From: Monocercomonoides exilis PA203
Lineage: Eukaryota; Protista; Preaxostyla
Assembly (NCBI GenBank): GCA_001643675.2
Contig: LSRY02000037.1
Span: 124,001 to 188,000, forward strand
Length of the DNA stretch: 64,000 bases
Direction of reading: 5' to 3'
Positions 1 to 19,300 of this stretch are shown one piece after another. Numbering within the stretch: the stretch's first letter is position 1; every line of letters starts with the position of its first letter. The notes under the pieces were generated by a model. That model saw only the letters and a program-made list of their open reading frames with translations. It did not search any database and was not told where the DNA came from. Made by a program: the position numbers and the translations under genes.

Positions 1-1
1 T

Positions 2-3000
2 TATCCTCAATTTGATCCAACTGCCTCGCAATTTCAACCTTATCTCACGCCTCTTGCTGCTCAGCACGCCCTGCCATTTCCACCAGACGATCCAGCGATT
101 GTGATAGAGGAGAGGGAGAAGACAGAGGAGGAGAAGAGAAAGGAGAGGGAGAAGGAGGAGAAGGAAGAAGAGGAAAATGAAGAAGAAGAAGAGGGAGAAG
201 AAGTGAGAAATGAAATGGATATGAACAATGCTGAAGGAAAAGAAGGAGAGAAAACAAAGAAAATCAAAAAAGAAAGCAAGAAAAGAGCAAAGAAAGAGAA
301 AGGAAGCGGATTTGACTCTGTTTCAGCAGCAGCATCAACATCAGGAATAACATCAATATCATCATCATCTTCTTCTTCTTCTTCTTCCTCTTCCTCTTCC
401 TCTTCCTCTTCCTCTTCTTCTTCTTCTTCTTCTTCCACCGTTCTTGTCTCATCCACCGCTCCTCTAGTGAATAGTGAGTCATTCATGACTGCCCCTCTCT
501 CTGTGAGTGACCGCCCTCATCTCTTCTCCTACGGACAAGACGCTGTTGCCCCTTCATACTCTTCTTCAATCGCTGCTTCAGCTTCTTCTTCTTCTCTTTA
601 TCCTTCTTCTTCTTCTTCTCCAATGTATATCCCCACATCCTCTGAGATTGAGTCTGCCGTGCAGATGAGCGCGTGTGTGAGTGAAATCACAGAAATCGAT
701 GAGAATGAGCCACTTTTCAGTCGTTCTTCTCTGCTTGTGAATGACACGAGGGAAAGAATAGCGATGATGGCGAAGGCGATGAAGGAGCTGAATGCGGGGG
801 AGAAGAGGAAGAGGGAAAGGGAGAGAGAAAGAGAAAGAGAAAGAGAGAGGGAGAGAGAAAGAGAAAGAGAAAGAGAAAGAGATATGGAGAAGGAGAAAGA
901 AAGAGAGAAAGAGAGAAGTAGGATGATGAGGATGGGATATCTTTCATCATCATCTTCTTCTTCCTCTTCTTCCTCATCCACTTCTTCTGATAACTTCGAA
1001 TATCTTCCAGAGCCCATCAAAGAAATCCCTGTGATGCTGTTTCTAGTTCCAGGAAAGATTCATTTGTTTGAGCTTCCTTCGAAGGAGAAAGAGGAAGACG
1101 CGAAAAGAGAAATAGAAAGAGAACAAAAGAGAGTTGAGATGGAAAGAAAGAAAGAAGAAGAGAGAAGAAAAGAACAAATGACTAATTCTTCTTCCGTTTC
1201 TTCTCAGATGATTAGCGATGATTCTAATATAGCATTATCGCAAGAACAAATTGAAAGCAGAAACCAACAAAACTCAATCACAACAACATCATCATCTTCT
1301 CCTTCTCCCTCCTCTTCCTCTTCTCCTCCTTCTCCCCCCTCTCTTCCCCCCGACATCGCATGCATCATCACCCAAGGCCGGCGCATCGTCGCCCAGCTCG
1401 TCTTCCCCTCATCCATGCCCTTCGTCACCGTCTGCCGCGAGCTCTCCCTCTTCACCCGCCCTTCCCGCCAGACGCCTTCCTTCGTGATGAAGCAGTACTC
1501 AAAGGGAGGAATCCCCAAACCCCCCATCGATCCAGTCACGTTTGCCACGACTGTGAGGGTGGCTGCGCAGGACGCAGAGGGAGTGACGGTGCTGAAGATA
1601 CCGCATGTGGAGAATGTGCCGTTTGAGCGGTATTTCCAGCCGGAGTTTCACGGGGCTGACACATCGTATAGGACGGATCCTGCACTGTTTGAGAGGTATG
1701 GGGACAGATGGGGGGAGGAAGGAGAAGAAGAAGAGGATGAGGAGGAAGAAGAGGAGGAGGAGGATGAAAGCAATGCTTCATCATTATCATTGCTTTCTGA
1801 GAATCAAAGGCATAATCGAGATGGAATGGTACAATTTGGTGGAAATGGAGGTATATCAATGATTGGCATATCTGGTGAATCCAATGAACTTCTCAAAGAT
1901 AAAGAAGGAGGAGAATTAGAAACAAAACGAGAGAAGAAGAAGAAGTCAACGAAGAAGAAGAAAGTTGTTATTGCGAATTCGGAAGAAGGATACAGCAGCT
2001 GTGGCTGTGGTGTGTCGTTTGGAGATGTTTGGGGGTGGAAAGGAGAAAAGAGAAGAACATACAGAAAAGCCAAGATGATTGCAGAAAGAATGAGGGCGAT
2101 AGAGAAAAAGAGGAAGCAAAAGTTGAATGGAAGAGGAAGGGAAGAAGAAGATGAAAAAGAAAGAGGAGAAGGAGATGACACAGGAAGCGTTTGCATTGAA
2201 AATTATGCAAAGAAAGATGGAGCTAACGACGAAAGACTGATAAGCAACACGAAATTGGAAGCAGAAGTAACCAAAGAGCATAACCTCATCCCCGCAAAAT
2301 TCTCTTCTCTTCTTTCGCGTCCAAAGAAGCTCACAAAAGCCATCCAGGAGAAGTTCTACACACTCACCAATGATGAAAAACTGCGTCTTGCTCGTTTAGC
2401 GCGTATAGCTTTGAGAGACCGGCATATTTCGCAATGGTCCATTCACATGTCTATTGGCCACACAGGGGAGTGGATGAAGGAGTCGTACCACTTCATCATG
2501 AAACTGAGGCTGTACATCAAACTTGTTGAGATCGCTATGAAGGAGCGCACAGAAAGACTGCTGGAAAAGCTGGCGAAGTGGAGGAAGCAGAGGGAGGAGA
2601 GGAGAAATGAGATGGGAGGAGGAGAGAAAGAAGGGGAAAGGAGGAAGTTTGGAGCGGGTGATGGAGGATTTGATGACAGTGCATCAATTTTGGCGCAGAG
2701 GATGTTGAGGCAGAGGCAAGGCAGCATGTATGGATGGGGTGGGAGAGGCGGGAGAGGAGAAAGCGATCGATATTCAGTAGCTTCTTCCACAGCCTCCTCC
2801 TCGTTGTCTTCATACAGCAGAGGGAATTTCCCTTCGAATGTTTCTTATTCCTCTTCTGCTGCTGGTGTTGGGGTTGAGACAACGTCGTATTTGTCTTATC
2901 AGTCTGGTTTCTCTGACCAGCAATCATTGGCATTTAGTGTGTATTCATCAGGATATTCACGAGGAGGAGCGAGAGAAAGAGAAAGAGAAAGAGAGAGGGA

Positions 3001-6000
3001 AAGAGAAAGAAGCAGAGATGGAGACAGAAACAGAGAAAGAGAACAAAGAAAGGACAGTCTTGACGGACGCAGCATCGCCTCCAGCTCGATCTATGCACCT
3101 TCACTCATATCTGGTTCAACGTTACCTTCACTCTATCACAGAAAATCCCCACAGCTCCCTTCCTCTGCTGTTACACCCACTTCTTTCATCAACCTGCAAC
3201 ATGAGTCGTTTCCACATGCAATGTATCCTGCTTCCTCTTCTTCTTCTACTTCCTCCTCCTCTTCTTCTGATCCAACAACCTCTTCTTCAATCGTCCCCTT
3301 CAACCAACTCACATCCTCCGAGCAGCTTCTGCGCCTTCTCCCCGAGCGCATCCGACGAGAGCTGACCATCTTGACGAAGATGATGGCGCGGATAACTGAA
3401 TTGAAAGAAGTGCACGAAGAACTCTATCGCTGCTTCACCCAGCACGAGCTGTATTTCCTGTGGCTGATGCACATTGGCGAGCTGTCGGCGATCCGACCAG
3501 AGCAAAAATGGAGGCGCAACTGGGTGAAAGTGATGGAGAAGCTGAAGAGCTGGTCGAGGAGGCACGAGAAGTGGGTGAGGGACGTGACGGAGAAGATGCG
3601 GCAGAAGCGAAGAAGACACAACAGAAACAGCAGGAGGAATGCAAATGGAGTGAATGCAGCTGGAAGCAAAGGGAAAGAAGGGAAAGGGAACAAAATGAAT
3701 AAGCAAGCAGAAGGAGCGAATCAACAGAAAGAGAAAGAGAATGAGAATGAAAAAGAACAAGGGCAGATGGATTCGACAGAAGCTGCTGAGAGTGAAGAGA
3801 TGAGGCCAGTTGACATAGGCGATGTGAGTGAGTTCAGAACACATCTTCCAGCTGTTCCACCCACAACAACATCAACGTCATTGCCATCTACTTCTTCAGC
3901 TTCTTCTGCTGTTGATGGAGCAGTCAGTCAGTTGCAGCAGAGTCAGTCTTCATCTGCTGGGGTAAATGGAGCAATGAATGGGAGGATGGCAGCAGAAGAC
4001 GAAGAGGACGATGATGAGAATGCTAATGGAATGAACAACATCATCCATCTTCCTGATGATGATATGCTTCCTATTGCTGGAGACAGACCTCCACTTGCAT
4101 TGCCTCCTCCTTCCTCTTCCTCTTCTTCCTCTTCTTCTGTTGAGAAACTCAGAAGAGGAAACACCACGCCCAGCCGAGCCAGCATGGGTTCTGCTAAGAC
4201 ACAGCCGTATTCCCAAGTGAGTGACAGTGCGAATCAGAGGAAGCAGAAGCAGAAGCAATTAAAAGAGAGGAAGAAGCTGTCTGTCATTCCGACTTCTCTG
4301 CTGCAGCCACTGCAGACGTCGTTGACAGACACGATTGGCTTTGATTTATACCCGGCTGACTTGAATGTGAATGAGCAGAGGGAGCAGTGGGTGGAGCTGC
4401 CGGGCGATAGTTTGTTTACAGAGGAGGAAGAAGAGAAGGAAGAGGTGAAGCTGAGTGAGGCAGTAGAGAAGGAGGAGAGGAGGAGGAAGAGAATGGAGCT
4501 TGGGGAAGAGATTTTGAGGAAGAGAAAGATGGAAAGGAGAGGAAAAAGAATGATGGAGGGAGGGATGGAAGAAGATGGTGACGAAGATAACAAAGAAGAA
4601 GAGGAAGAGGAAGAAGAAGAAGGAATATACGCCCAGAAGCGTTCAGGTGAAGACGAGGTTGAAAGAGAGAAGAAGGAAAAAGAAGTGAAAAATGTGTTTG
4701 GCGTTTCAGAAGACCGAGACGATGTGAATGACGCGGACGAAGCTGCAAAGGATCCATTTGACGAAGAGAACGCTGAGTGGACATGGAAGACAAGAATGAA
4801 ACCCGAACAGCTCAATCCATTCAATGATAATGATAATAATGATAATAATGATAATAGCAACAACAGTAATGGAGAAGAGGAAGATAATCTCTCAGATGTG
4901 AATGACGAAGAGAGGAGAAAAGAAGAAGGAGGAATGGATATTGAGGCAGCATCACCAGCACCGTTGTTACAGCCACTTTATCCATCCAGAGGAATAATGA
5001 ACAGAATTCACCAACACAAAACGTCAAAAGTGGTGAAGAGAAGAGAAAGGAGAAAGAAAGAGAGGAAAGGAGCAATGGAACAAGACGGTTCTGTTGAAGA
5101 AAGCAATCAAAGTGACAGCAACGGAAGTGGAAATGAGAGCATTGGCAATGAAAGAGTCGGCAGAATGGAGGAAGCAGGCAGAAGACGAATATATCATTCG
5201 CGTTATTCTTCTGTCAGACGCGTTTCCTCTGCCACTTCTCCAAATCAGCCATCCTTCTATGTACATTCAACAGCAACACCAGCAGATGCCTTCAACAGCC
5301 TGAAGAAGATGCATCCATCTTTGCCCTTCTCCCATCTCTGCCAGTTCACTCCGCGCTACCGCCGCCTGCGCCGCATCTACAACGCCCTAGAAAAATACGA
5401 AGACCTCTGGGACAACTTCTCCTCCACCCTCAGATGCCTGTGGCCAACCAGAGAGACCACAAGCGAAGCCAACCGCGTCCCACCACCAGCTGATCCCCCG
5501 TTGGAACTGGGTCTTTCCTCTAAGCACCTGCGAAGGCTGGTGGAGCGGTGCTGCGTTGCTGTGCGAGAATCGTCAGAGAAAGTGAAGCGCTATCTGCCGT
5601 CGCGTGTGATGCATCCGTTTGAGCACCCACACTCTCCTTTCATCCCTTGCAATCACGGCTGCCGAAGAGTCGGGATGTTCTACTCGTGGCAGATGAGCTA
5701 TCAAGTCGTGCTGCACAACAAGCACCACCGCTTCTTCCCAACCTCGTCTTCAGCTGTCTCAAAGGAAGACGTGAGAAAGGCGGTGGAGGCGAGTCCTGTT
5801 CCCGTTCTAACAGACGAAGAGAACGAGCGGATGGAGATATGGATGAAGCACAAGGAGCTTGTGGCAGAAAGACAGTTGGCAGTGAGGCATCTGCAAAGAG
5901 AGGAGGCAAGAAAAAGAGAGGAAAAAGCACTACGAAGCTTGGGATTTGAAGGTGTTGTGAATGGAGATGGCGAGGCAGATGAGACTTCTTCATTCAGACA

Positions 6001-9000
6001 TCTTTCAGTTACACAGCAAATTGAAGAGCAAAAAATGCAGCAATACAGAAGAGGAAGGAATGATCAAGCAATAACGCCACATCAAACTTCACCTTTCACT
6101 CTCTCTGCTCTTCCCCACCGCATCCCCATCCATCCTCGCCTGTATCAGCATCTCGTCCTTCTTTCAAAGAAGCCGTTTGTTTGCTCCTCTGCCACAGCCA
6201 CTTTTGGCTGGTTCAGCACTTTCTTTGACCCGCGTCGCCCGGTCTATCAATACGGCAGGTTCAGAGTGCCAAACACCTTCTGCCCTTCCTTCACAAACGT
6301 GCCTGTTCCCATCACTCTCAACCCATATTCCGCTGGTGGTGTGTTAAACGCTGCTTTTCTGAAGCAGACAAAGGAGTACATCACACGCGCCATTGCACAG
6401 CAGGCGATTCTGCAGCGCCGATACGAAGAGGCGATGGAGGCACAGAGGAGGATGTATCCACAGCAGCAGTATGGCTTTGGCGGAGGATATGGCTACGGTG
6501 GAGCAGCTGCTGCATCGCATGCACATCTTCACAGGGGATCCATCCATCATCAGAGGAAAGGATCTCTTCAGCCACCTCCTCCCATATTCACAAGAGAAGA
6601 GTTCGAAAGGTTTATTGCGATGGCAACGAGTCATTTTTCGCAGCCAGAGTATCGTCCGGTGTTGAAAGTGGATGTGCACTTTGGAGAAGGATGGAGAGAA
6701 GGACAGGCTGTGGTAAGTGTAGATGATTACATTAAGATGAAAAAGAAGAAGGAGAAAAAGAAGGAGAATAAAGGGAAGGGAAACAAGGAGAATTATGGAA
6801 GAGGGATGAAAGAAGAAGAAGAAAACGAAAAGGACAAAGCAAAAACATCAACTTCTTCTCATTCAATTGACGATGGTGTAAAGAACGAGTCTCGCAACTT
6901 CCACGGCCTGCTTGTTGTTGGCGACATCCACGGCAACTTCAAAGGCCTCCTTCAAGTGCTGTCTGTTGTGGACGAAGTCCTCTCAGCACCAGAAGGCAGA
7001 GGAAGCGTTGTCTTTCTCGGAGACTATGTCGATCGTGGCATTGAATCAATCGAGTGTCTTGTTCTGATCTTGCTGTACCGCCTGACGTATCCTCAGAGAG
7101 TGTTCCTGCTGAGAGGCAACCACGAATCCCACACCTCTTCTGAATATCAGCAAGTGAATGATGAGCTGAAGAACAGATACCCCATGAGTGAGCAGGCATA
7201 CTTCCCTTATCCTTACCCAGTGCGTGGCGCATACATCAGAGTCCACCCGCTTTTCGCATCGCTTCTGCAGCTGTTCAATATGATGCCATTGGCAGCTATT
7301 GCCACGCTTTTCTATCACCCTCCGCTGCCTGAAATTCCTCTTCCTCCGCAGAATGTGATTAGAGAAGTGAGTCAAATGGAGAAGGTGGAGAAGATGAAGA
7401 AAATGGAACAGAACAACAATGCCGTTCAGACAAATGATCCATTTTCTTCTTCTTCTTCTTCTTCTTCAAATAATATAAATAATAACAATAGAAACAAAGA
7501 AATGAATCAGTTAAATCAGATGAGCTCGATTGAAGGACAAATGAATGATGTGTCTGTAATCAGCGGAAGAAGCGACAATACAGCAACAGACAACACAAAT
7601 TCACTTATTTCTTCAATGGAAAACAATTCAACATCGATTGCTTCTTCTTCTTCTTTTCCATCTGCGAATCAATCTTCTTTAATGACAAATGGCATTAATG
7701 GAGAACAAACCATACAGCAACAAGTGCAAAGAATCAATTCTAAAGGAACAATTGTTGGAAAGGTGTCATTAACCGGAGATTCACTCATTACAGCCAGTGA
7801 AACATCAACTTCTTCCTCTTCTTCCACTTCTGCTTCCTCCTCCTCCTCTTCTTCTTCTTCTTCTTCTTCAACATTTCATCGTCTTCGCAGAAAGCGCTAT
7901 CCAATTCCAGTGTTTGAAGAGTTTATTCCTGCCCTCACACTTCGCCCTCACTTGCCAAAAATACATCGCCAGAGGTTGATGCAACAAAGTGCAGATGGAA
8001 ACAATGGAGGTATTTCATATTCATCGTCTTCTTCTTCAGCTTCTTCTTCTTCTCCTTCTTCTTCTTCCTCAAATTTCAATGATTCTTCTCAATTCTTCAA
8101 CACTTCACCTTCAAATATCACTTTGCCTGGTCAAACTTCCAATGCTGCTTTTCTAAACACATCTTTCTCCACAACATTGCAGCAGACACCTAATTCATCA
8201 TCATCATCTTCTTCTTCTTCTTCATTATCCTCTTCACCATCTCAGGATTCACACAACTTACTGGTTACACCTCCTCTGCCTTCATCAACATTACCATCTT
8301 CTTCTTCCTCTTCCTCTTCCTCTCCCTCTTCCTCTCCTTCATCTTCTTTATCTCCTTCCACCCCTACCCACACTCATCACATCTCCCCTTCTGCCTTCCA
8401 ATCGCAGCAAGAAAAGACAAAACGCCTTCTTTGGCAGCAGATGTCAGAGAAAGAGAAGCTGAAGCAGGCGGAAAAACAAGACGTGGATGTATCACAGCTG
8501 GTTGAGAAGATTGGCGAACTCACAATAGAAGCACCAATTTTGAATGGAGTTGCAATTAATGATTCTTCTGTTCCTTCTGCTTTGTCTGTTGATGAGGGAA
8601 ATCTTTCTTCTTCATCTTCTTCTCTTGTTAAAACAGCTGATAATGTGCAAATAAAAGGAAACGAGATGGATATTGAACCAGAGCCAGTGAGCATCTACCA
8701 ACAAGGAGAGAGAGAAAATATGACACAGATTGGAGCTTCTTCGAATATTTCGTCTTCTCCTTCGTCTTCTCCGCAGTCGTCGCTGATGAATTCAGATGAT
8801 TCAGGGCAGTATCCAATGCTTATGGAGTCGATATATGGAAGAGATGCAACTGAAACTGATAACGATGATGATAATGACAATGACAATGAGGAAGAAGAGG
8901 AGGAAGGAGATGAGGAGGAGGAAGAAGGAGGAGAAGGAGGAGAAGGAGGAGCAGAGAAAGAAGGAAACTTGAATGGGAAAAAGAGTTTAATTCGTCATGA

Positions 9001-12000
9001 AACCGTTCGTCGTCACGTCCGCAAAAAGGATAGTTCTGCTTCATCTTCATCTTCAGCTGGAAATGAGATGGAAGGAGAGAAATCTCAGCACAGAAACGAA
9101 TCTGGAGGAGATGACAGTGAAGGAACAGAAAGTGTAACAGAAACAGAAGCAGCAGAGACGAGTGAAGGAGAAGGCAATATCATTCAAAATACATTTGGAG
9201 ATGGAACAACTAACACAAATGTAAATGGAATGAATATGACATCTTCACGGAACAATACTGCTCAACAGCAAGGAAAAAGCCAAGAAACCAAACAGACAAG
9301 CAATCAGAGAGCAAAACGAAGGAAAGCCAAAGAAGATGCATCTAAGCTCCCATTTGTTGTGAACATTCGAAGATGCCCATGCTGCCTTCCCAACAATAGC
9401 AATCAAACAAATACAGATTCATCAGCTATTCCTTTATCATCATCTTCATCCACATCTTCCTCTTCCTTAACCATCTCGCCATCAAAGCCCTTCCCCCGCT
9501 CTCCATTCGTCAAACCTTTCCGCTGCCGCTTCGACCGCACTGCCATCCGCTCTCACTTGGCTGATCCTCTTTTCCCTTCGCAAATACCACACAGAATCAC
9601 CAGACACACCCCGCAGATTGTGTCTGTCTGCCACCGCTGCCATTTCTGTGGGAAGTGCTCAGTCCATTCAGAGGGGAATAAGCAGAATAGAAAGGGGAAA
9701 AGAAAAACAGGAGGAGAAGGAGGAGGAGAGGAGAATGTGAATAATGATGGAATAAATTATAATCTTTCAAATTCTTTTTCCTCTTCTCAAAAATGCTCTT
9801 GTTTGTGTCATATTCACCATTCTGATGCATCTCATGCTCCAATCACTTCGTCGCCGCTTGCTTTATCTTCTGCTAATTCAAATGCTTCATTCATTTCACA
9901 TTCTGAAAATTCGCCTTTCACTTCATCTGTCAATCAAACAACGCAAACGTCAAACAACCAAATCATTGGATCTACCTTATCAGCATCATCATCTTCAACT
10001 TCTTCTTCTTCTATATCATCCATCAGAACAAATGAAACATCACCAGTATGGGATGAGTATGCTGCAGTTGTGGTGGAGAAAGGAAAAAGTGAAGCGGAAG
10101 AGAAAGACAGACTAATAAATGGCCTATCAAAAACAGGATTAGTTCCATTCAATTCTCTCAACATTTCAAACAATTCATTTCCTTCTTTGCCTTCTTCCTC
10201 AATCTCTTCACAAAATTCTTCAAATGCACAAAAATTACCACCACGTCTTCTCCCTTCCTCTCGCACTGAGAAAAGGTCGCTGAATGAGAAATGCCTTTGT
10301 TATTCAACAAAAGGCATCTTTTGTGCAGCTTCAACCCCTCAGCGTTCATATGTGTGCATCGAAAGGGGGAAGAAGAATTCGTTTGACGATCGCTCAAAAC
10401 AAGAAGAAGAAGAAGGAATTGCATTTTCTGGCTCTTCATTTGCTGCTCATTCAGGAGGTGACGTGCTGATGGCGATGGATGAGGAGAAAGCATTGGGAAG
10501 AGGAACACAACTTCCCCTGCATCTGTCAAGACGCTCCCACACTTTCACAAGCTCTTCTGCTTATTCACACAACCAGCGCAGTAACATGAAATTTTCTTCT
10601 TCTTCAAAATCTTCAGCTCAACACGGCTTTTTGAATGTGGATGATGAAAATGACACCACAAATGACTTTGAAAACGACTCGCCCACTCCTCTTTCATCTG
10701 ACATTGATATGTCTTCTCTCTCTTCCACAGCATCTGGTCTGTTCCCCAAAAGAGGGAGTCCAGAAAGCAACAAAACAAAAGCTTATCAACAAAGCGTAGG
10801 AAACAACACTGGAATGGCTATTAACACGTCTGATTATTCATCATCATCTTCTTCTTCTTCTTCTTTCGGATTCACACCCGTTTTTGAAGCACCAGCGCCT
10901 CGAAAATCTCGTTCAGCACCTCCAACTGACATGTTCATGCCAAATGCTGTGGGAATTATGTATTCACAGTCTTCTCAAGCATACCAGACGCAACAAACAT
11001 ATCAGCAGTATCAGAGAAACATTCAGGATATTTCAAATGTCCAGCCATTCATACCAAGCAGTGGAGATGCATTCACTTCGAGCTATCCTTCTGCTTCTGA
11101 GCAAAGTGGTTTGCTTGATGCATCTTCATCATTATCTTCAACCACATCTCAATCATCTTTCTCTTCATTCCCTGCCTCCTTCACCACTGTTTCCTTTGCC
11201 CCATCTCCTTCCATTCCATTCATGCGTTCTCTTTCACCTCCTCCAGCTTCTTCTTCATCTTCTTCCAGTTCGGCCTTTTATTCGCCTCTCCGTGCTGTCA
11301 CAGGATCCTCCTCAAAGCAGTTCACTTCGTTTGCGATGGGAATGGCCCCTCAAACAGCAGATTCAACAGCAAGACAATATTCGCAGCAGCAGCAACAAGA
11401 GAATCACCAGGGATCGCAGATATTCCAGTCGATCTACGGTACAGATAAAAACTCTTCCAATTCTGATGCTTCAAACCCATCTTCCATTCATCTCACTAAC
11501 TTTGATGGCTATCAACACGTCACACCATTCATTTCATCTGCTCAGAACATTCAGCAACAGAACAATGTGAACAATGGCCAGTCTTCTTCAAGGCATCCAA
11601 TGAGCCACAAGGAGCTGATGATGCATTTGATGCTGATGCACAACCGGAGAGTTCAGAAGAGAATGCGAAGAGATGGAGGAAAACGGTGGAAAGTGGACTC
11701 AGAGGATGATTCGCTGCATTTGGGCAGGTCTGTGCATGGAGCGATGGGGAAGGAAGGCAGAGGCAAAGCAGCAGCTGTGAGAGGGAGAGGGAAAGAAGGT
11801 GGGAAAGATAAAGATTTGAAATTGAGTCTTGATGAAAGCGATTCATTGGCAATGAATGCAAGTGGAAAGATTACGAATGGCCTGGCGAATGAAGTGGAGT
11901 TCGATGAAAGTGAAACCGAAGAAGAAGAGGAGGAGGAGGAGGAGGAAGGTGAAGACGAAAGAGATAGAGAAGAAATTACAGAAAGTTCACTTGGATCAAT

Positions 12001-15000
12001 TGGGTCAGTTGTGATGCAGAACGCAGATGACACTGATTTGATGGTATCAGACACATCAAAAGCAGAAGAAAGAGGAGCACACCACAAAAAGAGCAAACGT
12101 TACAAGATTTCAAAGAAGAGTTCCCAGAAAATAAAGAGAATAAAGTCGAAGATGGACTACACTCCTTATCTGAGCTGTGTGTGTTCATGCAATTTTATCC
12201 ACTTTGCCCAGAGTCAGCAAATAACTCTTCAAGAACAAGCAAATTCTAGCGTTAGAGGAGGAGATGGAGCAATGCAGATTGGTCAGTTGGGAGAACAGAA
12301 TTTGAATCCATTTCAGCAAAAAGATGGGAAAATATCATCAGCAGAGGTGTTTGAGGTTGATTCCACGGCAGGAAGCATTCTTCTCTGTCGTGTCGAGAGA
12401 AAGGATAGTCAAACATCAGCTGCTCCTTCAAATACTACAAATTCATCAAATACTTCATTGAATGCAAATGGTGCAGTTGTTGCATCTCCAGCATCTGCCT
12501 TTGCTGCTTCATCGATGAATATGACGTTGTTGAAAGATACTTCTCAGATGTCTACGCTGCCTTTTTCTCCTGCTGGGCATTTTGCTTCCTCTTCTTCTCT
12601 CCTCAAATCGCCAATCTATTCTAATGGAAGCGTGCTTTCCTCTCCTCAGTTCTCATATAACTCTTCTTCTTCATCTGATTCATCTCAAACCTCTTCTGAC
12701 TTTATCTCCACTCAGCAAGCATCGCTTTTATCATCACCAGCAGCATCGTCTTTGAATGTAACTTCTCCGTTTCTTTCGCAAAACATCACAAATGCGCAAC
12801 CTGGTTCGTCTGCTGTTTCTGGAGGAGCAAGCGAAGTGGAAGGATCTCCGGTCCTGCTTCATCCGTCACCTGTGCATTCAGTTGGAATGGAGCAGATGGA
12901 AGATCTCGGATTCGGAGAGAAGCAGCCTCAAGCAACATTACAAATGCAGTCGCTCAGTGGCACAGGTGCAATCTCATTTGGCTCTCAGCCTGATATGTTT
13001 GAGCCCACATACCAGCAAGTTTCTTCGGCGTCTGATAATGTCAATGCAGCAGACACACAGCCAACTGTGCGTGAGGCAAATCCTGTGCCAGCATCCACTT
13101 TTGTGCCTCCAGCGCCGCACGTGGAACGTCGGAGAATTATTCTTTTGCATGGAGGTATTTCTCCGATCCTGCCAATCCCATCACTGGAAGACGAGTTCAC
13201 ACATATTGCTCCACTGGACATAACAGACAAGCAGAGGAGGAATCTGCGCGATGGATGCAACCAGGTGCTTCGGGATCTGCGCACACGGGAACTGGATCTC
13301 ATCCTGTCCACATTGTGGGGTGATCCAGGAGACAAGGACCAGACAGACTCAGGCCGGCCGTACTTCTCGCCGCAGACAACCGAACGATTTGCCGTAAAAA
13401 ACAAGGCTGATTTGGTTATCAGAGCGCATCTTCAAGGAGCACAGGGAGCATTTGTGTATCATGGTTCACGTATCTTGACTTGCTTTTCAGATCCTGATTA
13501 CTGCTGTAATCCAACTCAGGGAACTGTTATGCTTCTGAAATTGACACCAAACCCATCTCAAACAAGATCGTCAATTCATGTGCCTTTGAGTTCAGCACGC
13601 ACTTCACAAGCAGGAGCGATTTCAGCTTCTCAATCCTCATCATCATCGACTTTTTCTTCTTCTTCAGCTACACTTCCACTCACACGCACATCACTTACGC
13701 ATGCAGCTGATAAAGCCCTCAACCAGCTTGTTAGAAAACTGGAGCAATCGCAGGAAGAATACTTCAACCAGCTGCAGTACGATATCGAGACAAACAACAT
13801 CGACCCAACACATCGCCCGCCTCCTCCTCCGCCGAAGCCTCTGAGGCAGAGAGAGAAGGGGGTTGTGTGCACCCGCAATTTGATGGGTGAAGAGATCGAT
13901 GGGACGGGCGATGTTGACTGGTCACTGTTTCTGGAAAAGGGGCTGGGAGAGCTTCTGTTTACTGACGAGTCACTCAAAAGACTCAAAAAGGACGATTCAT
14001 CGACAACAGATTCCTCTTGTTCAAATATACCAAGCACTGTATCTGCAAAGGCAGCATCTGCAGCTGCATCGTCACTTCCACCTTCTCCGTTGTTCACGAT
14101 CGATATGATTAAGTTGGACATCTACGACCATTCCACAACCATCACGCCAGAAACGTACGATATTTTGTTGAAGGAACAGGAGCAGCGAAGGGTTGTGCGT
14201 GAGGTCGAGCATCGCAGTCAACAACATGCCATCGACTCGCTCCATCGAAAGCTGATGAGTCAAGCTCTGAAAATTGTGGAGGCTGAGAAAATGCACTTTG
14301 TGGATTTCCATGTGAAGTCATTCGCTTTGGAATCTTCAACTATGCCACTTATTTCAAACGTATCAGCATCGTTGTCTCAACCATCATCAGCTGCATTGCC
14401 TTCCGCAGTATCGCCATTCTTGCAACTTCCATCTGCATCAACTCTTATCTCTGCTGTTGTATCTGATCTGATGATGCTTTTGTACAACAACGGTGCTGTG
14501 TCTGACTGTCTCTGCAAGCTCGGCGAGTTTGGCAGCTCTGTCGTCCACTGCGAGAAGGAGCTGCTTATTGCGAAGGTCAGAGAAAGAATCAAGCAGGTAG
14601 TGGAAGAAACAGAAAGCATACGACCGATTCTGGACAGCATTCAGCAGCAACTCTCACTTCAAGCACAACTGCAGCTGCAAATGCAATACCAAGTGCAAAT
14701 ACAACCGCAAATCCTTTTTGCGGGAAGCGAAACACATAACATCTTGTCGAGCAATCATCAAATGCCGTTCATTCAGAATGAGCCGCTTGCAGTTCAATCC
14801 AGTCAACTTGAGAGACTTTCTATCCAACAAGTAAGTACGACAACTCCTTCTCTCGAGCCCTTGCAAATATATCCATCTTCTTTGAATCCTGTGCAGCATC
14901 AACAAGAATCAAGCTTGGAAATGATGCTTCAAAGGAATGAAGAGAATCCAGTTGAAAAAAATAGGGAATCTTTGCTTGAAGGTGGAGTTCAATGTGAAGT

Positions 15001-15115
15001 ACCTGCAATGGGCATTTCAGATAAAGATGAAAGCAATATCAACGATATGGAAAAAGATGAAGAGGGTGAAGACTTATTTAATGATATATTGAATACTGAT
15101 ATCTACGGAAAGTGA
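2..15115 (+). CDS. Giant (>5,000 aa) PPP-family Ser/Thr phosphatase-like protein with extensive poly-Ser/poly-Glu low complexity; 5' end lies outside the window
   Basis: The frame is open from nt 2 (YPQFDPTASQ...) to TGA at 15113-15115; the track start at 101 is only a GTG. PPP motifs occur in order: GDIHG 6920, GDYVDRG 7019, GNHE 7115, MPLAAI ~7283, LLHGGISP (His 13148), LWGDP 13316, GR (Arg 13355), IRAH 13421, FSDPDYC 13484. Confidence 0.9.
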   Translation, partial: YPQFDPTASQFQPYLTPLAAQHALPFPPDDPAIVIEEREKTEEEKRKEREKEEKEEEENEEEEEGEEVRNEMDMNNAEGKEGEKTKKIKKESKKRAKKEKGSGFDSVSAAASTSGITSISSSSSSSSSSSSSSSSSSSSSSSSSSTVLVSSTAPLVNSESFMTAPLSVSDRPHLFSYGQDAVAPSYSSSIAASASSSSLYPSSSSSPMYIPTSSEIESAVQMSACVSEITEIDENEPLFSRSSLLVNDTRERIAMMAKAMKELNAGEKRKRERERERERERERERERERERERDMEKEKEREKERSRMMRMGYLSSSSSSSSSSSSTSSDNFEYLPEPIKEIPVMLFLVPGKIHLFELPSKEKEEDAKREIEREQKRVEMERKKEEERRKEQMTNSSSVSSQMISDDSNIALSQEQIESRNQQNSITTTSSSSPSPSSSSSPPSPPSLPPDIACIITQGRRIVAQLVFPSSMPFVTVCRELSLFTRPSRQTPSFVMKQYSKGGIPKPPIDPVTFATTVRVAAQDAEGVTVLKIPHVENVPFERYFQPEFHGADTSYRTDPALFERYGDRWGEEGEEEEDEEEEEEEEDESNASSLSLLSENQRHNRDGMVQFGGNGGISMIGISGESNELLKDKEGGELETKREKKKKSTKKKKVVIANSEEGYSSCGCGVSFGDVWGWKGEKRRTYRKAKMIAERMRAIEKKRKQKLNGRGREEEDEKERGEGDDTGSVCIENYAKKDGANDERLISNTKLEAEVTKEHNLIPAKFSSLLSRPKKLTKAIQEKFYTLTNDEKLRLARLARIALRDRHISQWSIHMSIGHTGEWMKESYHFIMKLRLYIKLVEIAMKERTERLLEKLAKWRKQREERRNEMGGGEKEGERRKFGAGDGGFDDSASILAQRMLRQRQGSMYGWGGRGGRGESDRYSVASSTASSSLSSYSRGNFPSNVSYSSSAAGVGVETTSYLSYQSGFSDQQSLAFSVYSSGYSRGGARERERERERERERSRDGDRNREREQRKDSLDGRSIASSSIYAPSLISGSTLPSLYHRKSPQLPSSAVTPTSFINLQHESFPHAMYPASSSSSTSSSSSSDPTTSSSIVPFNQLTSSEQLLRLLPERIRRELTILTKMMARITELKEVHEELYRCFTQHELYFLWLMHIGELSAIRPEQKWRRNWVKVMEKLKSWSRRHEKWVRDVTEKMRQKRRRHNRNSRRNANGVNAAGSKGKEGKGNKMNKQAEGANQQKEKENENEKEQGQMDSTEAAESEEMRPVDIGDVSEFRTHLPAVPPTTTSTSLPSTSSASSAVDGAVSQLQQSQSSSAGVNGAMNGRMAAEDEEDDDENANGMNNIIHLPDDDMLPIAGDRPPLALPPPSSSSSSSSSVEKLRRGNTTPSRASMGSAKTQPYSQVSDSANQRKQKQKQLKERKKLSVIPTSLLQPLQTSLTDTIGFDLYPADLNVNEQREQWVELPGDSLFTEEEEEKEEVKLSEAVEKEERRRKRMELGEEILRKRKMERRGKRMMEGGMEEDGDEDNKEEEEEEEEEGIYAQKRSGEDEVEREKKEKEVKNVFGVSEDRDDVNDADEAAKDPFDEENAEWTWKTRMKPEQLNPFNDNDNNDNNDNSNNSNGEEEDNLSDVNDEERRKEEGGMDIEAASPAPLLQPLYPSRGIMNRIHQHKTSKVVKRRERRKKERKGAMEQDGSVEESNQSDSNGSGNESIGNERVGRMEEAGRRRIYHSRYSSVRRVSSATSPNQPSFYVHSTATPADAFNSLKKMHPSLPFSHLCQFTPRYRRLRRIYNALEKYEDLWDNFSSTLRCLWPTRETTSEANRVPPPADPPLELGLSSKHLRRLVERCCVAVRESSEKVKRYLPSRVMHPFEHPHSPFIPCNHGCRRVGMFYSWQMSYQVVLHNKHHRFFPTSSSAVSKEDVRKAVEASPVPVLTDEENERMEIWMKHKELVAERQLAVRHLQREEARKREEKALRSLGFEGVVNGDGEADETSSFRHLSVTQQIEEQKMQQYRRGRNDQAITPHQTSPFTLSALPHRIPIHPRLYQHLVLLSKKPFVCSSATATFGWFSTFFDPRRPVYQYGRFRVPNTFCPSFTNVPVPITLNPYSAGGVLNAAFLKQTKEYITRAIAQQAILQRRYEEAMEAQRRMYPQQQYGFGGGYGYGGAAAASHAHLHRGSIHHQRKGSLQPPPPIFTREEFERFIAMATSHFSQPEYRPVLKVDVHFGEGWREGQAVVSVDDYIKMKKKKEKKKENKGKGNKENYGRGMKEEEENEKDKAKTSTSSHSIDDGVKNESRNFHGLLVVGDIHGNFKGLLQVLSVVDEVLSAPEGRGSVVFLGDYVDRGIESIECLVLILLYRLTYPQRVFLLRGNHESHTSSEYQQVNDELKNRYPMSEQAYFPYPYPVRGAYIRVHPLFASLLQLFNMMPLAAIATLFYHPPLPEIPLPPQNVIREVSQMEKVEKMKKMEQNNNAVQTNDPFSSSSSSSSNNINNNNRNKEMNQLNQMSSIEGQMNDVSVISGRSDNTATDNTNSLISSMENNSTSIASSSSFPSANQSSLMTNGINGEQTIQQQVQRINSKGTIVGKVSLTGDSLITASETSTSSSSSTSASSSSSSSSSSSSTFHRLRRKRYPIPVFEEFIPALTLRPHLPKIHRQRLMQQSADGNNGGISYSSSSSSASSSSPSSSSSNFNDSSQFFNTSPSNITLPGQTSNAAFLNTSFSTTLQQTPNSSSSSSSSSSLSSSPSQDSHNLLVTPPLPSSTLPSSSSSSSSSPSSSPSSSLSPSTPTHTHHISPSAFQSQQEKTKRLLWQQMSEKEKLKQAEKQDVDVSQLVEKIGELTIEAPILNGVAINDSSVPSALSVDEGNLSSSSSSLVKTADNVQIKGNEMDIEPEPVSIYQQGERENMTQIGASSNISSSPSSSPQSSLMNSDDSGQYPMLMESIYGRDATETDNDDDNDNDNEEEEEEGDEEEEEGGEGGEGGAEKEGNLNGKKSLIRHETVRRHVRKKDSSASSSSSAGNEMEGEKSQHRNESGGDDSEGTESVTETEAAETSEGEGNIIQNTFGDGTTNTNVNGMNMTSSRNNTAQQQGKSQETKQTSNQRAKRRKAKEDASKLPFVVNIRRCPCCLPNNSNQTNTDSSAIPLSSSSSTSSSSLTISPSKPFPRSPFVKPFRCRFDRTAIRSHLADPLFPSQIPHRITRHTPQIVSVCHRCHFCGKCSVHSEGNKQNRKGKRKTGGEGGGEENVNNDGINYNLSNSFSSSQKCSCLCHIHHSDASHAPITSSPLALSSANSNASFISHSENSPFTSSVNQTTQTSNNQIIGSTLSASSSSTSSSSISSIRTNETSPVWDEYAAVVVEKGKSEAEEKDRLINGLSKTGLVPFNSLNISNNSFPSLPSSSISSQNSSNAQKLPPRLLPSSRTEKRSLNEKCLCYSTKGIFCAASTPQRSYVCIERGKKNSFDDRSKQEEEEGIAFSGSSFAAHSGGDVLMAMDEEKALGRGTQLPLHLSRRSHTFTSSSAYSHNQRSNMKFSSSSKSSAQHGFLNVDDENDTTNDFENDSPTPLSSDIDMSSLSSTASGLFPKRGSPESNKTKAYQQSVGNNTGMAINTSDYSSSSSSSSSFGFTPVFEAPAPRKSRSAPPTDMFMPNAVGIMYSQSSQAYQTQQTYQQYQRNIQDISNVQPFIPSSGDAFTSSYPSASEQSGLLDASSSLSSTTSQSSFSSFPASFTTVSFAPSPSIPFMRSLSPPPASSSSSSSSAFYSPLRAVTGSSSKQFTSFAMGMAPQTADSTARQYSQQQQQENHQGSQIFQSIYGTDKNSSNSDASNPSSIHLTNFDGYQHVTPFISSAQNIQQQNNVNNGQSSSRHPMSHKELMMHLMLMHNRRVQKRMRRDGGKRWKVDSEDDSLHLGRSVHGAMGKEGRGKAAAVRGRGKEGGKDKDLKLSLDESDSLAMNASGKITNGLANEVEFDESETEEEEEEEEEEGEDERDREEITESSLGSIGSVVMQNADDTDLMVSDTSKAEERGAHHKKSKRYKISKKSSQKIKRIKSKMDYTPYLSCVCSCNFIHFAQSQQITLQEQANSSVRGGDGAMQIGQLGEQNLNPFQQKDGKISSAEVFEVDSTAGSILLCRVERKDSQTSAAPSNTTNSSNTSLNANGAVVASPASAFAASSMNMTLLKDTSQMSTLPFSPAGHFASSSSLLKSPIYSNGSVLSSPQFSYNSSSSSDSSQTSSDFISTQQASLLSSPAASSLNVTSPFLSQNITNAQPGSSAVSGGASEVEGSPVLLHPSPVHSVGMEQMEDLGFGEKQPQATLQMQSLSGTGAISFGSQPDMFEPTYQQVSSASDNVNAADTQPTVREANPVPASTFVPPAPHVERRRIILLHGGISPILPIPSLEDEFTHIAPLDITDKQRRNLRDGCNQVLRDLRTRELDLILSTLWGDPGDKDQTDSGRPYFSPQTTERFAVKNKADLVIRAHLQGAQGAFVYHGSRILTCFSDPDYCCNPTQGTVMLLKLTPNPSQTRSSIHVPLSSARTSQAGAISASQSSSSSTFSSSSATLPLTRTSLTHAADKALNQLVRKLEQSQEEYFNQLQYDIETNNIDPTHRPPPPPPKPLRQREKGVVCTRNLMGEEIDGTGDVDWSLFLEKGLGELLFTDESLKRLKKDDSSTTDSSCSNIPSTVSAKAASAAASSLPPSPLFTIDMIKLDIYDHSTTITPETYDILLKEQEQRRVVREVEHRSQQHAIDSLHRKLMSQALKIVEAEKMHFVDFHVKSFALESSTMPLISNVSASLSQPSSAALPSAVSPFLQLPSASTLISAVVSDLMMLLYNNGAVSDCLCKLGEFGSSVVHCEKELLIAKVRERIKQVVEETESIRPILDSIQQQLSLQAQLQLQMQYQVQIQPQILFAGSETHNILSSNHQMPFIQNEPLAVQSSQLERLSIQQVSTTTPSLEPLQIYPSSLNPVQHQQESSLEMMLQRNEENPVEKNRESLLEGGVQCEVPAMGISDKDESNINDMEKDEEGEDLFNDILNTDIYGK

Positions 15116-16371
15116 TGCTATTTTTCCTTTTATATTACTTATTTTTGAATAACTTGATTTTTTCAAATGTTTTCTTCATTTGACATTTTTTTTTTATAAT
15201 CTTTTTTAAAAATAGTTTTCGTATCTCTCATAAAATGATACTTTTTATTGAATTGAATAAATTATATTAAGCAGTCAAATAGAAGTGAATAAGTAAAATA
15301 AAACAATGAAAAGTGAATAACAAATCTCATTTTGATCAAAAAGATTCAAATCAACAAGATTTGTCCAAAAAATAACAGAAAGAGATAAAAAGTTTCAAAA
15401 CGATGGAAAGAAATAAATAATTTGATGAAAAAAATAAAAGATAAATATCCATTTTCATTTGGATGCACAATAATTTTATATTTTTCTTGTGACAATTTAA
15501 GCATAACTTCCTGTTGAGGAACAAATCTCAGTTTATAAAAACAAATTTGAACATTGTTTTAAGAACTTATCAATTTTTTAATGTGGAATGAAATCACTTG
15601 CTTCATGAATCTGGTTCAACTCTATTTTTTCTAGTATTTTTCATAATTTTCTTATTTTTTTTCTATAATTTTTTGCATAAGAATGACAGACTTGTGAAGA
15701 TATGATTTCAGATAAGTTTTTAATAAATCGTTGTATTTTTCAAAAACGCAAAAAATATTTCACGTTTGTGTGAGCAAGTTAGTGATAAATTACAAATTCA
15801 AGTCGTAATTATGAATTGAATAAACTGAAATTTTTCACTGAAAGAATATAAAATTGAATGAATATTGATATGAAATTAAAATCATTTCAACGCAATAATC
15901 TCTCAAATCAAAATGAAAATAAACTCATCAATAAATATTCTTCTGTTTAAACGCAAAAAAAGAATAATTATAAATTGTGAACGCAAGGGTGTGGAATTAC
16001 ATATATATACATGTTGTTGAAGATGAAAGGGTGTTGGAGTCACAATGTCAACAAAAATCAAAAGACATCTCTTTTACGAGTGTCACTCTCAAAAGATGTG
16101 AAACGAAACTGATTGCAAAAGATGAAATCAAGAATATATAATACTGCTAACATTCACATGATATAATCACAAAACCCAAACGATATTCAAACAAAATCTC
16201 ATCCAACAAAAATAGAAATTTTTAATTTGAACAAAAATTCAACAAAATTCAACACAAACAAAAATACATTGAAGTTGCTTTCAAAAACAAAAAGACTGGA
16301 AAAAACACATCAAATCTATTCATTCACTTCGTTCACATCAGAATGTTTCCCTTTGTTTGGAATTAGCTTTT

Positions 16372-19300
16372 TCATTGTGCAGCATTCTCATTCGTATTTG
16401 TCTCACTTTCATCACTTTTCTCACATCCACTTTTTTTCATTTCCTTTTCTTCAGAGGACTCTTCCAATTCAATCGCATCTGACATCGTCACAATCACCAT
16501 CTCCGCTGGAAAGCGCTTCATGAACTCCCGCTTCAGCTGCGTGAGCGACGGACGGTCTTCTGCTGACGAAGAAATGCAATTTTTGATGGTTTCATAATAT
16601 GAGTTTGCTTGTAACTCCTCCAATGCAGGTCTTTCTCCATTCACAATCTTCTGCCCTGCTCCCTCCCCATCATACTCTCCAAACGGTATTTGAAGAGTCA
16701 AGCACTCCCACAGCATCATCCCAATCGAAAACACAACTGACTCCTTTGTTGCCCCCATCTTCTTGTTGATCAGCAGCTCTGGTGCCTTCCACCTCAGGCA
16801 CTCTTTTTTGAAACTATCTTCATCCTCAAAGGCAGATGAAGGTGGTGGTGAATCTGTGAATCTCTCGCTCATCACCGAAACATTGGAGGAAGAAGAAACC
16901 ATTGTCACCAAAGAGATGGAAGAAGAATCTGAATCATCTGATGAAAGCAAATCAGAATGCATAACGATGCAGATCACCATGTGCTCAGAGAAAAGAATAA
17001 TGTGTGGGCTGAGATTGGAAAGAGAAGAGAGCGAATTGTCCATTTCATCAAAGGAGTGGAGTGCGAGATTAGTCACCCAGAACAGGATTTGAGCTGCTGT
17101 CTGCTCCCTCTCCTGAAGAGTGCCTATCGCTATCTCTTTTGTCTTATTCCTTCCATGAAGCAGCATGAACAGCGAATCCCTCAGATCCACAATCAGCTTC
17201 TCATGAGGAGATGAACATGCCATCGCATCCACCAAGTTCGACATCGATGAGGTTGTTGGGCACAGATCCTCACCTCGAACAAATGTTGTGTCTGTGTCCG
17301 AAGTATCTGTTGTTGAAGTTGATGAAATTGATGGTGATGGCGTTCTCTTTCTTGTCTCTTCCTCATCTTCAACCTTCTCGAGCATCCACTCTGGAATCCT
17401 GTCTGAATCTCTTCCAAGGATATATTCAGTTGATCCACTCTCACTCAATAAATGCTCCGATGACTCCGAATGTCCCAAGCTTTTTTCATATACTCTCTTC
17501 TTTATCCTTTCTTCGTTCTTCTCAGCTTCTCTTTCTGCCCTCCTCCATTGTGCCTCTGGAGACATCTCCATCGTCACCATCTCAAATGCCTTCGGATCTT
17601 TTCTGATGTTATCATTCACAATCTCTCTCAAATCTTTATTCTCATTCCTTGCCTTTCTCCATCGAATCGTCATGATAATAGATACAATAAGAATAATCAC
17701 AAGAATAACTGCCATGATTATAACAATCAATAACAAATAAGATTTCCCTTCTTTCCCTCCTTCAACAATCTTTTCATCATCTTTTTGATTTGTTTCACTT
17801 GCATTCTTCAGAATAAATGACTGAGTTGACGAAGGAGATTCTGCATTCCCAAACAAAATGTGCACACTCATCTCAACATCATCTCCACAACTCCTGATAA
17901 GATCCTTTGTCACACTTCCTTCAACTTCCCTTTCTGACAAAAATCCATTTGATTCAAAATCATGTTTTTCAATCTCTTTCTCCTCTCCTTTCCTCTTCAC
18001 AACTGCGAATGACAGATTGCATGGAACAAGAAGCATTCCTTTGAATGTAAGTTTCATTTTATCTGTCTCTTCTTTTTCTTCCACACTCTCCAGAACAGGA
18101 ATGAAAAATGATGAATCCCTTTCTGAAGCAATCCCTTCAAAACTGCACCCTTCATTCAACATCCAAAGTGATGCATTATCCTTCAATCCATCTCCTCCTT
18201 TCAAACTCATCACTTTCAATGTTCCTGAATCTGAACAGATGATGTTTCTTCTCATTGAAGGATATCCTTCAACTGAAGGATTATTGTTCTCAAATCTTCC
18301 ATCATTAACAGATAATGCTCCTCCACTCATCGTAATTCCACCTTCTGGTGAATTTGATATTGTTGTGTCTTTCATCATCACTGAACTCTTTGTGATGCTA
18401 ACAAGAGATCCATCCCATCTGCAAATCTCCTCTTCGTCATTCAAATATTGCTCATTCCTTTCCTTTGTTCCTCCATCAAACAAACATGATCCAATCAGCA
18501 CATCCACACACTCACAAATCTCCACCATTCTCCCTCTCTCATTTGTGCCCTGGCATTGAGCAAATGAACAGTTTAGCACACTCATTCTCTTTTCGGCTCC
18601 TTCCATCTTCATCACACTCTCATTCCCACAAACAGAGTTATTCTCAAAATTCACTTCCTTCATCTCCATTTCAACCTTCCCTCCAGCACAAATCAAACCA
18701 CATTCACTCATCACATCCCAAACTCCAATCTCATTCATCGAAACCTTTCCCTCTTTGGTGAACGAGAGAAGTGGTGCTGTGGTGTGAATCCCATCAAATG
18801 TTGTTTCTGTCATCTTCAGCTCTCCTCTCTCCACACCCACAATCCTGCTCTTCATCACCAGATCCATCGTTTCTGAGCTGAACAAACACTCCGAAATCTC
18901 CAATCTCCCATCCTTCTCTTTCACAATGCTTTCCCCATCCCACCCAAACATCCCCCCAAACACAAATCCACATCTCTCCACAACACACTCATCAACAAAC
19001 ACAATCACACTTCCTCCATTCATTTCATCTTCTTCAATCACGGTATTGAAATGAATGGTTGCCTGCACTCTCTTCAATGGTTTCACATTCAAATCTCCAA
19101 TCTCACACACTCCCCCAATCAGACATTCTCCATCAATCCACAATACATTCATGAGATTCTTTTCGATGTGCCGAACTCCACAGCAAATGCTTTGGCATGG
19201 CTTCTCCTGTGCCCCACACTGTCTGCTGTCGCTCCCTTTCACTGACACAAACACCTGCACCGTATAATAGAATGTGATCAGCGGAATCAGATCAACATCA

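Follow-up and report, generated by a model that had tools for sequence, protein, structure and literature searches.

How can an enzyme domain be interrupted by almost two thousand residues and still keep both halves of its active site? This question is raised by a gene of the oxymonad Monocercomonoides exilis PA203, located in a 64,000-nucleotide (nt) stretch of contig LSRY02000037.1 (assembly GCA_001643675.2, positions 124,001 to 188,000, forward strand). We call this stretch the window, and positions refer to it unless another source is named. An earlier note on this DNA had described a PPP-type phosphatase domain split in two by an in-frame insertion of ~1,940 residues. The note left two readings, in which either the active site assembles across a giant disordered loop or the insert is removed at the RNA or protein level. 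On sequence grounds the gene is assigned to a family of giant PPP-type Ser/Thr phosphatases that is specific to oxymonads. We consider it probable that this is one translated M. exilis gene in which a hairpin turn has ballooned into a loop, and that the enzyme closes around that loop.

Results and discussion

Two complementary halves of one catalytic domain

The split of the phosphatase domain within one open frame was confirmed as real, because complementary partial matches to the same Pfam family were found for the two halves and each half also matched sequences in the Protein Data Bank (PDB). In the open reading frame (ORF) as listed for the window, Metallophos (PF00149) matched the N half at residues 2271-2399 (nt 6911-7297; profile 4-104, E 1e-13) and the C half at residues 4335-4443 (nt 13103-13429; profile 100-187, E 2e-3 in a long piece and 9e-5 alone). 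These are the two non-overlapping partial matches that the earlier note had anticipated. Against the PDB sequences, the N half aligned with PP1 residues 58-145 (E 6e-16) and the C half with PP5 203-278 and PP1 185-274 (E 6e-8 to 3e-5). Both halves scored about equally against PP1, PP2B and PP5, and no named PPP subfamily fits. A Pfam scan found no TPR, EF-hand, IQ or other Pfam domain in the gene or its oxymonad relatives.

The motifs from GDIHG to FSDPDY were rechecked on the translation and lie where the note had placed them. The metal ligands Asp and His of GDxHG are present, with GDIHG aligned to PP1, and both GDxVDRG and GNH[ED] follow in the N half. The C half holds the His of HGG, the phosphate-binding Arg, the His of RxH and the Tyr of the SAPNYC-like motif. 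In the PP5 alignment, which spans WGDP, Arg, RAH and FSDPDYC, the phosphate-binding Arg and the RxH His pair correctly. The domain is not contiguous as in other PPPs, since GNHE and HGG are separated by 2,009 residues, in comparison to 48 in the canonical enzymes. The split is a departure in architecture, without loss of any catalytic feature. Two smaller expansions accompany it. The Lys/Glu-rich insert before GDIHG that had also been noted is present (~70 residues, ~6683-6895), and between HGG and WGDP (13157-13315) there are 58 residues, compared to 34 in canonical PPPs and 56-78 in five paralogues.

The insert is coding sequence and is present in RNA libraries

The giant insert has no in-frame stop among its 1,939 codons, whereas the other five frames hold 63-133. 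In 1000 shuffles of the insert the expected number of stops was on average 108, with a minimum of 72. A stretch of such length cannot remain open by chance, which argues that selection keeps the insert translatable. Serine makes up 21% of its residues, with Asn, Glu, Gln and Thr next, and the description of ~5.8 kb of Ser-rich, stop-free coding sequence thus holds. The insert is 5,817 bp long with a GC content of ~43% (0.45/0.49/0.34 by codon position). It is mostly non-repetitive but compositionally biased, and its true repeats are a few short TCT and GAG trinucleotide tracts. No second copy of a 500-residue central piece was found in the own genome, for which our searches covered 82,301,135 bases in 101 contigs; the Nanopore assembly of M. 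exilis PA203 consists of 101 contigs of ~82.3 Mbp (PMC8767320).

Four RNA libraries contain 86-91% of the sampled words of 6900-13500. Contigs from these libraries cover ~86% of 7250-13249 with zero mismatches, and they break only at trinucleotide tracts. Both borders of the insert are bridged colinearly, by contigs running from ~4600-5000 through 7434 and from 11971 through 13249 to ~14950-15090. The libraries are labelled metatranscriptomic and "synthetic metagenome" (2024), and are probably those of an M. exilis culture study in which total RNA was DNase-treated and depleted of ribosomal RNA (PMC12308965).

These data bear on the possibility that the RNA loses the insert, which would then be a giant or nested intron or be spliced alternatively. 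M. exilis has ~35,000 spliceosomal introns (PMC8767320), and a minor isoform could escape assembled contigs. However, introns of this organism have a mean length of 119 bp and a GC content of 27.6% (PMC8767320), far from the 5.8 kb and ~43% of the stop-free insert. The contigs are colinear over both borders, and among the contig joints listed none has GT..AG ends. The sides and overlaps of the joints are 20-23 nt long and lie in Ser- or Glu-codon repeats. Removal would also need to hold for the six paralogues described below, all with open frames, and we regard it as decidedly unlikely. As a spliceosomal intron the insert was rejected on its length, GC content, lack of in-frame stops and colinearity in the RNA-library contigs.

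An in-frame insertion within a conserved catalytic domain would also suit an intein or another self-excising protein element. The Pfam scan gave no Hint or intein match anywhere in the ORF. The insert starts with Phe-Tyr-His and ends with His-Val-Glu followed by Arg, so neither the Cys/Ser/Thr nucleophiles nor the His-Asn that define intein junctions are present, and the intein was rejected as a candidate. The inserts of the family vary from 216 to 1,939 residues and are unalignable in sequence, which also speaks against a self-excising element, and the chance of one is close to negligible. The proposed removal at the RNA or protein level is thus unsupported.

An assembly artefact joining two half-genes could be suspected in a Nanopore-based assembly with low-complexity tracts in the region. 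It is very unlikely, because DNA runs of 2016 and 2022 contain 75-98% of the sampled words of 6900-13500 and because the architecture is repeated in six paralogues and in a Streblomastix protein. The RNA contigs, colinear without mismatch, argue against it as well.

A family with one insertion site and graded inserts

Searches of the own genome with each half as query gave six further M. exilis loci (L001 to L006) with an N half and a C half in the same order. Each of them lies in one giant frame that is open end to end. The nearest relatives were found in two other oxymonads, Blattamonas nauphoetae and Streblomastix strix. According to the alignments, the insertion point is the identical beta-hairpin turn in every family member, and all metal and phosphate ligands are invariant in all seven M. 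exilis genes as well as in the relatives from Blattamonas and Streblomastix, in line with the claim that catalytic residues are retained in both halves. At this shared site the M. exilis inserts measure 216, 467, ~500, ~1,000, ~1,480, 1,651 and 1,939 residues, and Streblomastix KAA6392785 has 234. A comparison with orthologues had been proposed, and the Blattamonas and Streblomastix proteins indeed share the insertion site with shorter inserts. The corresponding GNHE-to-HGG spacings are listed in Table 1.

In a maximum-likelihood tree made from two conserved blocks, the oxymonad family formed its own clade; a long branch, supported at 100%, separated it from the five canonical PPPs used as outgroup (a small sampling). 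The gene under study pairs with L001, with 57-60% identity in the halves. The short-insert Blattamonas protein KAK2954185 groups with M. exilis L002, L003 and L004 (86% bootstrap), which places the large expansions later than the split of Monocercomonoides and Blattamonas. In the closest pair, L002 and L003, the halves are 83-86% identical and the inserts 43%, with large indels, and the halves of L004 are 66-81% identical to theirs. The inserts of these three genes (467, 216 and 1,651 residues in L002, L003 and L004) are essentially unalignable, so that the length and the sequence of the loop must turn over fast.

The conservation bears on a further possibility, that the domain is a decaying pseudo-phosphatase in which the split killed catalysis while the gene was kept for its other regions. 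The extreme spacing and the large, conserved N-terminal blocks of uncharacterised function would fit this, as would the weak score of the C half against Pfam (18.8-23.4 bits, cut-off 21.5). Yet every ligand is kept in the seven paralogues and in the Blattamonas and Streblomastix proteins despite deep divergence, which is unexpected in a dead domain, and we think a pseudo-phosphatase improbable. That the ligands of both halves are conserved together in three genera and in no fewer than seven gene duplicates is in our view the strongest argument that the halves would cooperate.

Some loci deviate from the common plan. L006 (G000:C12:125300-132000) is in three pieces, with an extra Ser/Pro-rich insert of ~60 residues between GDLHG and GDYIDRG, a main hairpin insert of ~1,480 residues and an HGG-to-WSDP gap of 227 residues of poly-Ser and Arg/Glu runs. 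L007 (G000:C20:772162-772992) encodes an unsplit PPP domain (Metallophos 4-190, E 9e-30) inside a frame of 2,715 codons with Lys/Glu-rich flanks. Long low-complexity flanks are therefore common in this genome, whereas the hairpin split belongs to the oxymonad family alone.

The public oxymonad relatives are annotated merely as hypothetical or as "PP2A catalytic subunit". The Pfam scan of the Blattamonas and Streblomastix relatives matched only Metallophos, and so gave no clue to the N-terminal blocks. In the literature searched, naming Monocercomonoides or Blattamonas with "phosphatase", the giant PPP family is undescribed. An exhaustive search of a collection of 15 billion proteins did not contain the protein of this gene and gave a best match of 48% identity. 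A word-indexed protein search with ORF residues 2165-2420, in a length window of 2,750-8,750 residues, gave no match; the relatives are shorter. The closest non-self relative of the N half is a 195-residue sequence on a metagenome contig of 1,353 nt in ENA (48% identity). It is degenerate, with FLKDIVDRG for GDYVDRG and RLCDHEF for RGNHES, and may be a copy that has decayed in some relative.

The halves are predicted to pair at the hairpin

The two natural pieces, N (6590-7400) and C (13100-13600), were co-folded as separate chains with no artificial join. The interaction prediction score from aligned errors (ipSAE) was 0.80 (0.79-0.82 in three runs), whereas the best of three controls reached 0.01. 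Between runs, at least 70% of the contacts recurred, and the predicted local distance difference test (pLDDT) of the partner was at least 67. In the calibration of the tool, 51 of 78 solved complexes and 2 of 108 mismatched pairs attained this mark. The best contacts paired LAAIA (chain 1, residues 235-239) antiparallel to RIILL (chain 2, residues 12-16) with an expected error of 0.4-0.7 Å. This pairing would be the canonical PPP hairpin, which the anchor residues at the two ends of the insert are predicted to stretch into a longer ribbon.

For L003, with its 216-residue insert, AlphaFold2 was run on two alignments. With 48 sequences the pLDDT was ~85-96 in the halves and below 50 in the insert, and the loop is thus predicted to be disordered; with 7 sequences the model was poor (mean pLDDT 41.5). 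The L003 model matched PP2A, PP1, PP5 and RdgC with a probability of 1.00 in alignments that span both halves, and its template modelling score by target was 0.60-0.69 for catalytic-subunit chains. Assembly of the active site across the giant loop is in this way supported by the L003 model and the co-fold, next to the conserved ligands and the common hairpin site.

We propose that the turn linking the LPxAAI strand to the xxxHGG strand would be a permissive insertion site in the oxymonad family. In PP1, the strand ending in His173 begins at the hairpin turn Asp166-Lys168, a turn of ~3 residues. From this geometry, the turn would lie at that end of the beta-sandwich which is remote from the metal site. 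The flanking strands would pair antiparallel, so that the loop ends come to lie side by side. With adjacent ends and an unblocked catalytic face, an insertion could grow without breaking the fold. A proline-rich stalk, YHPPLPxIP outward and PPAPxxE-RR back, may lengthen the hairpin and carry the loop off the core. The N half would give Asp, His, Asp, Arg, Asn and His, the C half His, Arg, His and Tyr, and the halves together could close into a normal two-metal active site. The turn would have ballooned independently in each M. exilis paralogue, giving a fast-evolving Ser-rich loop of 216-1,939 residues. The loop would be translated, largely disordered and weakly constrained, its sequence mostly tolerated and not selected.

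The co-fold is also what would be expected if a protease cut the insert after its translation. In the mature enzyme the N and C halves would then be joined non-covalently as a heterodimer, with the loop as a pro-region or discarded. The halves are predicted to associate as separate chains, and a long disordered Ser-rich loop would be an easy protease target; however, besides the anchors and a Cys/His island no motif that could be a processing site is conserved among the paralogues. Such cleavage seems unlikely to us, and it would be a variant of the explanation that we prefer, not a contradiction of it.

Several points weigh against an intact enzyme closing around its loop. PPP structures are well known to the model, and the co-fold score may reflect its memory of them, so that the co-fold speaks for compatibility with the alpha/beta sandwich fold and is not proof of it. 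On the RNA side the evidence comes as contigs, assembled from rRNA-depleted total RNA; residual DNA in the libraries is possible, and contigs conceal rare spliced isoforms. The absence of the protein from the large collection means that there is no independent gene model. What was observed is that the domain is split, that the insert is coding and occurs in RNA libraries, that the family shares the pattern and that the residues are conserved; that the protein is produced, folded in this way and active is what we infer. Folding is a real problem, as the N half awaits ~1,940 further residues before its partner emerges. At eukaryotic elongation rates, this is a wait of several minutes of translation.

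A conserved Cys/His island in the loop

The greater part of the loop changes so fast that it does not look constrained. One island rich in Cys and His recurs in the inserts of L001 (E 2e-5), L005 (9e-5) and L006 (4e-4), and it was the sole significant insert-to-insert match. It is missing from the Blattamonas relatives, and the island from four paralogues matched no Pfam family at E up to 10. The island looks like a small metal-binding knuckle and may bind a metal or a partner. A second Cys knuckle (SCPP-x-LS ... C-x-x-CG) is possibly common to the inserts of Streblomastix KAA6392785, L002 and L004. The matches are weak (E 0.3-0.4), and the database was tiny. Should the knuckle be real, the hairpin insert may have begun in the ancestor as a small module rich in Cys. 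At the borders of the loop, the distal anchor has a proline-rich pattern followed by E/R-R-R (PPAPxxE-(E/R)-RR) in most family members.

The loop as a functional module is a more ambitious reading. A tethered Ser-rich arm would act as scaffold, pseudosubstrate or phospho-regulated gate, with the putative Cys/His metal-binding knuckle (CH-R/K-CHxCxxCSxH ... CxCxCH) docking a partner or folding back onto the core. We hold this for a rather doubtful possibility. If true, it would be a new regulatory architecture of PPPs, with the regulator built into the catalytic fold and not into separate subunits.

Extent of the gene and its surroundings

The coding exon extends further than the ORF list suggests. 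The listed entry, 101-15115 with 5,004 codons, starts at a GTG at 101 that is an artefact of the window edge. In the genome sequence the frame is open over 5,570 codons in total, the first of them 1,697 nt ahead of the window. The motif coordinates of the note stood, but the gene is larger than it appeared there. Of the 566 further open codons upstream of the listed start, the first ~70 resemble AT-rich non-coding sequence. A conserved N-terminal domain of the family (GF-x-CVFVFDEP type) lies further upstream, at G000:C33:121647-122279 (L008:2647-3279, L008 being G000:C33:119001-124300). It is in the same phase as the main frame but beyond a stop, which suggests a first exon followed by an AT-rich intron of ~300-400 nt. 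The encoded protein would have ~5,600-5,700 residues.

Two blocks ahead of the catalytic domain are conserved with the Blattamonas and Streblomastix relatives. The first, at 5315-5800 (residues ~1752-1898), is rich in Cys and His (PFIPCNHGC ... HNKHHRFFPTSS). The second, CSSATATFG...FDPRRPV at 6158-6307 (residues ~2020-2069), lies ~200 residues before the catalytic domain. Neither block matched a Pfam family, and they appear to be uncharacterised domains of the oxymonad family.

Downstream of the stop codon there is a 1.25-kb spacer with 24% GC (15116-16371), and beyond it a convergent ORF of 2,708 codons on the reverse strand (16372-24498). Several RNA-library contigs stop at ~14950-15090, just short of the stop codon, and do not enter the spacer. 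The features of the gene are collected in Table 1.

Table 1. Features of the split phosphatase gene in the window and GNHE-to-HGG spacing in the family. Residue numbers are those of the listed ORF unless a chain of the co-fold is named.
Feature	Position (nt)	Strand	GNHE-to-HGG spacing (residues)	Basis or remark
Giant coding exon of one gene	1..15115	+		Stop codon at 15113-15115; frame already open at first base of window
N-terminal helix and first strand of PPP domain (FTREEFERF ... PVLKVDVHF)	6587..6682	+		Conserved in paralogues; chain 1 residues 17-34 touch C half in co-fold
First small insert, ~70 residues, Lys/Glu-rich, between strand PVLKVDVHF and GLLVVGDIHG	6683..6895	+		Translation; PP1 alignment begins only at query residue 107
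N half of catalytic domain	6896..7309	+		Pfam Metallophos and PP1 match
GDIHG	6920-6934	+		Translated motif
GDYVDRG	7019-7039	+		Translated motif
GNHE	7115-7126	+		Translated motif
Strand MMPLAAIATL	7280-7309	+		Translated motif
In-frame insert at hairpin turn, 1,939 residues	7310..13126	+		Stop count, composition, RNA-library contigs
Proximal anchor FYHPPLPEIP	7310..7339	+		YHPPLPxIP kept in 5 of 6 paralogues; lengthens first hairpin strand; chain 1 residues 234-246 in predicted interface
Cys/His island in insert, CHRCHFCGKCSVH, ~42-residue variable linker, CSCLCH	9629..9811	+		Residues 3177-3237
Distal anchor PPAPHVE and strand RRRIILL into HGG	13106..13147	+		Alignment; chain 2 residues 6-18 in predicted interface
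C half of catalytic domain	13148..13555	+		Pfam Metallophos profile 100-187; PP5 and PP1 matches
HGG	13148-13156	+		Translated motif
WGDP	13316-13327	+		Translated motif
Arg in SGRPYF	13349-13366	+		Translated motif
RAH	13421-13429	+		Translated motif
FSDPDY (FSDPDYC, SAPNYC-like)	13484-13501	+		Translated motif
Canonical PPPs, including ordinary M. exilis PPP L007			48	
Blattamonas			71-107	
Streblomastix KAA6377188			129	
M. exilis L003			288	
M. exilis L002			539	
M. exilis L005			560	
M. exilis L001			1,082	
M. exilis L006			1,536	
M. exilis L004			1,731	
Gene under study			2,009	

Implications

A catalytic domain of ~300 residues that keeps all active-site residues around an insert six times its own length at one hairpin turn lies near the limit of what studies on domain insertion regard as tolerable. 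The length series of the paralogues, together with the short-insert orthologues of two other oxymonads, is material for studies on the folding of discontinuous domains. The case also illustrates how such genes come to be overlooked or broken up by gene finders and domain callers. M. exilis is a model eukaryote without mitochondria, in which signalling is little explored. The largest gene family of M. exilis is that of the tyrosine-kinase-like kinases (PMC6759080), and a private family of giant phosphatases belongs in the same picture.

Comparison with known systems

The gene resembles the canonical PPPs (PP1, PP2A, PP5, calcineurin A) in GDxHG, GDxVDRG, GNHE, HGG, WxDP, Arg, RxH and the SAPNYC-like FSDPDYC, and in the predicted fold. 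It differs from them in the 1,939 residues between the LPxAAI and xxxHGG strands (spacing 2,009 versus 48) and in the smaller inserts between strands 1 and 2 and between HGG and WxDP (58 versus 34). It also differs in its setting, as the domain lies in a protein of at least ~5,600 residues with conserved uncharacterised N-terminal blocks. The N-terminal blocks, the hairpin site and the proline-rich anchors are shared with Blattamonas nauphoetae KAK2954185, KAK2960447 and KAK2956627 and with Streblomastix strix KAA6392785 and KAA6377188. However, the Blattamonas inserts are ~12-60 residues long, Pfam sees one contiguous domain in these proteins and they have no Cys/His island, while the Streblomastix inserts have ~40-234 residues.

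Inserts are also known in the RdgC/PPEF phosphatases, whose catalytic domains have species-specific insertions of unknown function (PMC1885993). These are PPPs with insertions in the catalytic domain as well, and RdgC was among our structural matches. In contrast to the present gene, the PPEF inserts are short, and the IQ and EF-hand regions of PPEF are absent here according to Pfam. The paper on the PPEF structure does not mention inserts in the catalytic domain.

In Plasmodium, PfPP-alpha/PPKL has "five unique inserts" in its catalytic domain, and PP2C domains are split by inserts of 140-200 residues (PMC2559854). The likeness is in lineage-specific, compositionally biased inserts that split a catalytic domain with its motifs intact. 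The M. exilis insert is, however, ~10 times larger and belongs to Metamonada, another supergroup. The expansion is nearly all at one hairpin, with graded lengths among paralogues and an embedded Cys/His motif. Biased composition, a position at a hairpin turn, indel-rich fast evolution and intact catalytic motifs were all found here, and the insert is an extreme variant of this known type of lineage-specific low-complexity insert. Inserts in phosphatase catalytic domains are thus already known; new are the size of the insert, its concentration at a single hairpin, the graded paralogues and the Cys/His motif.

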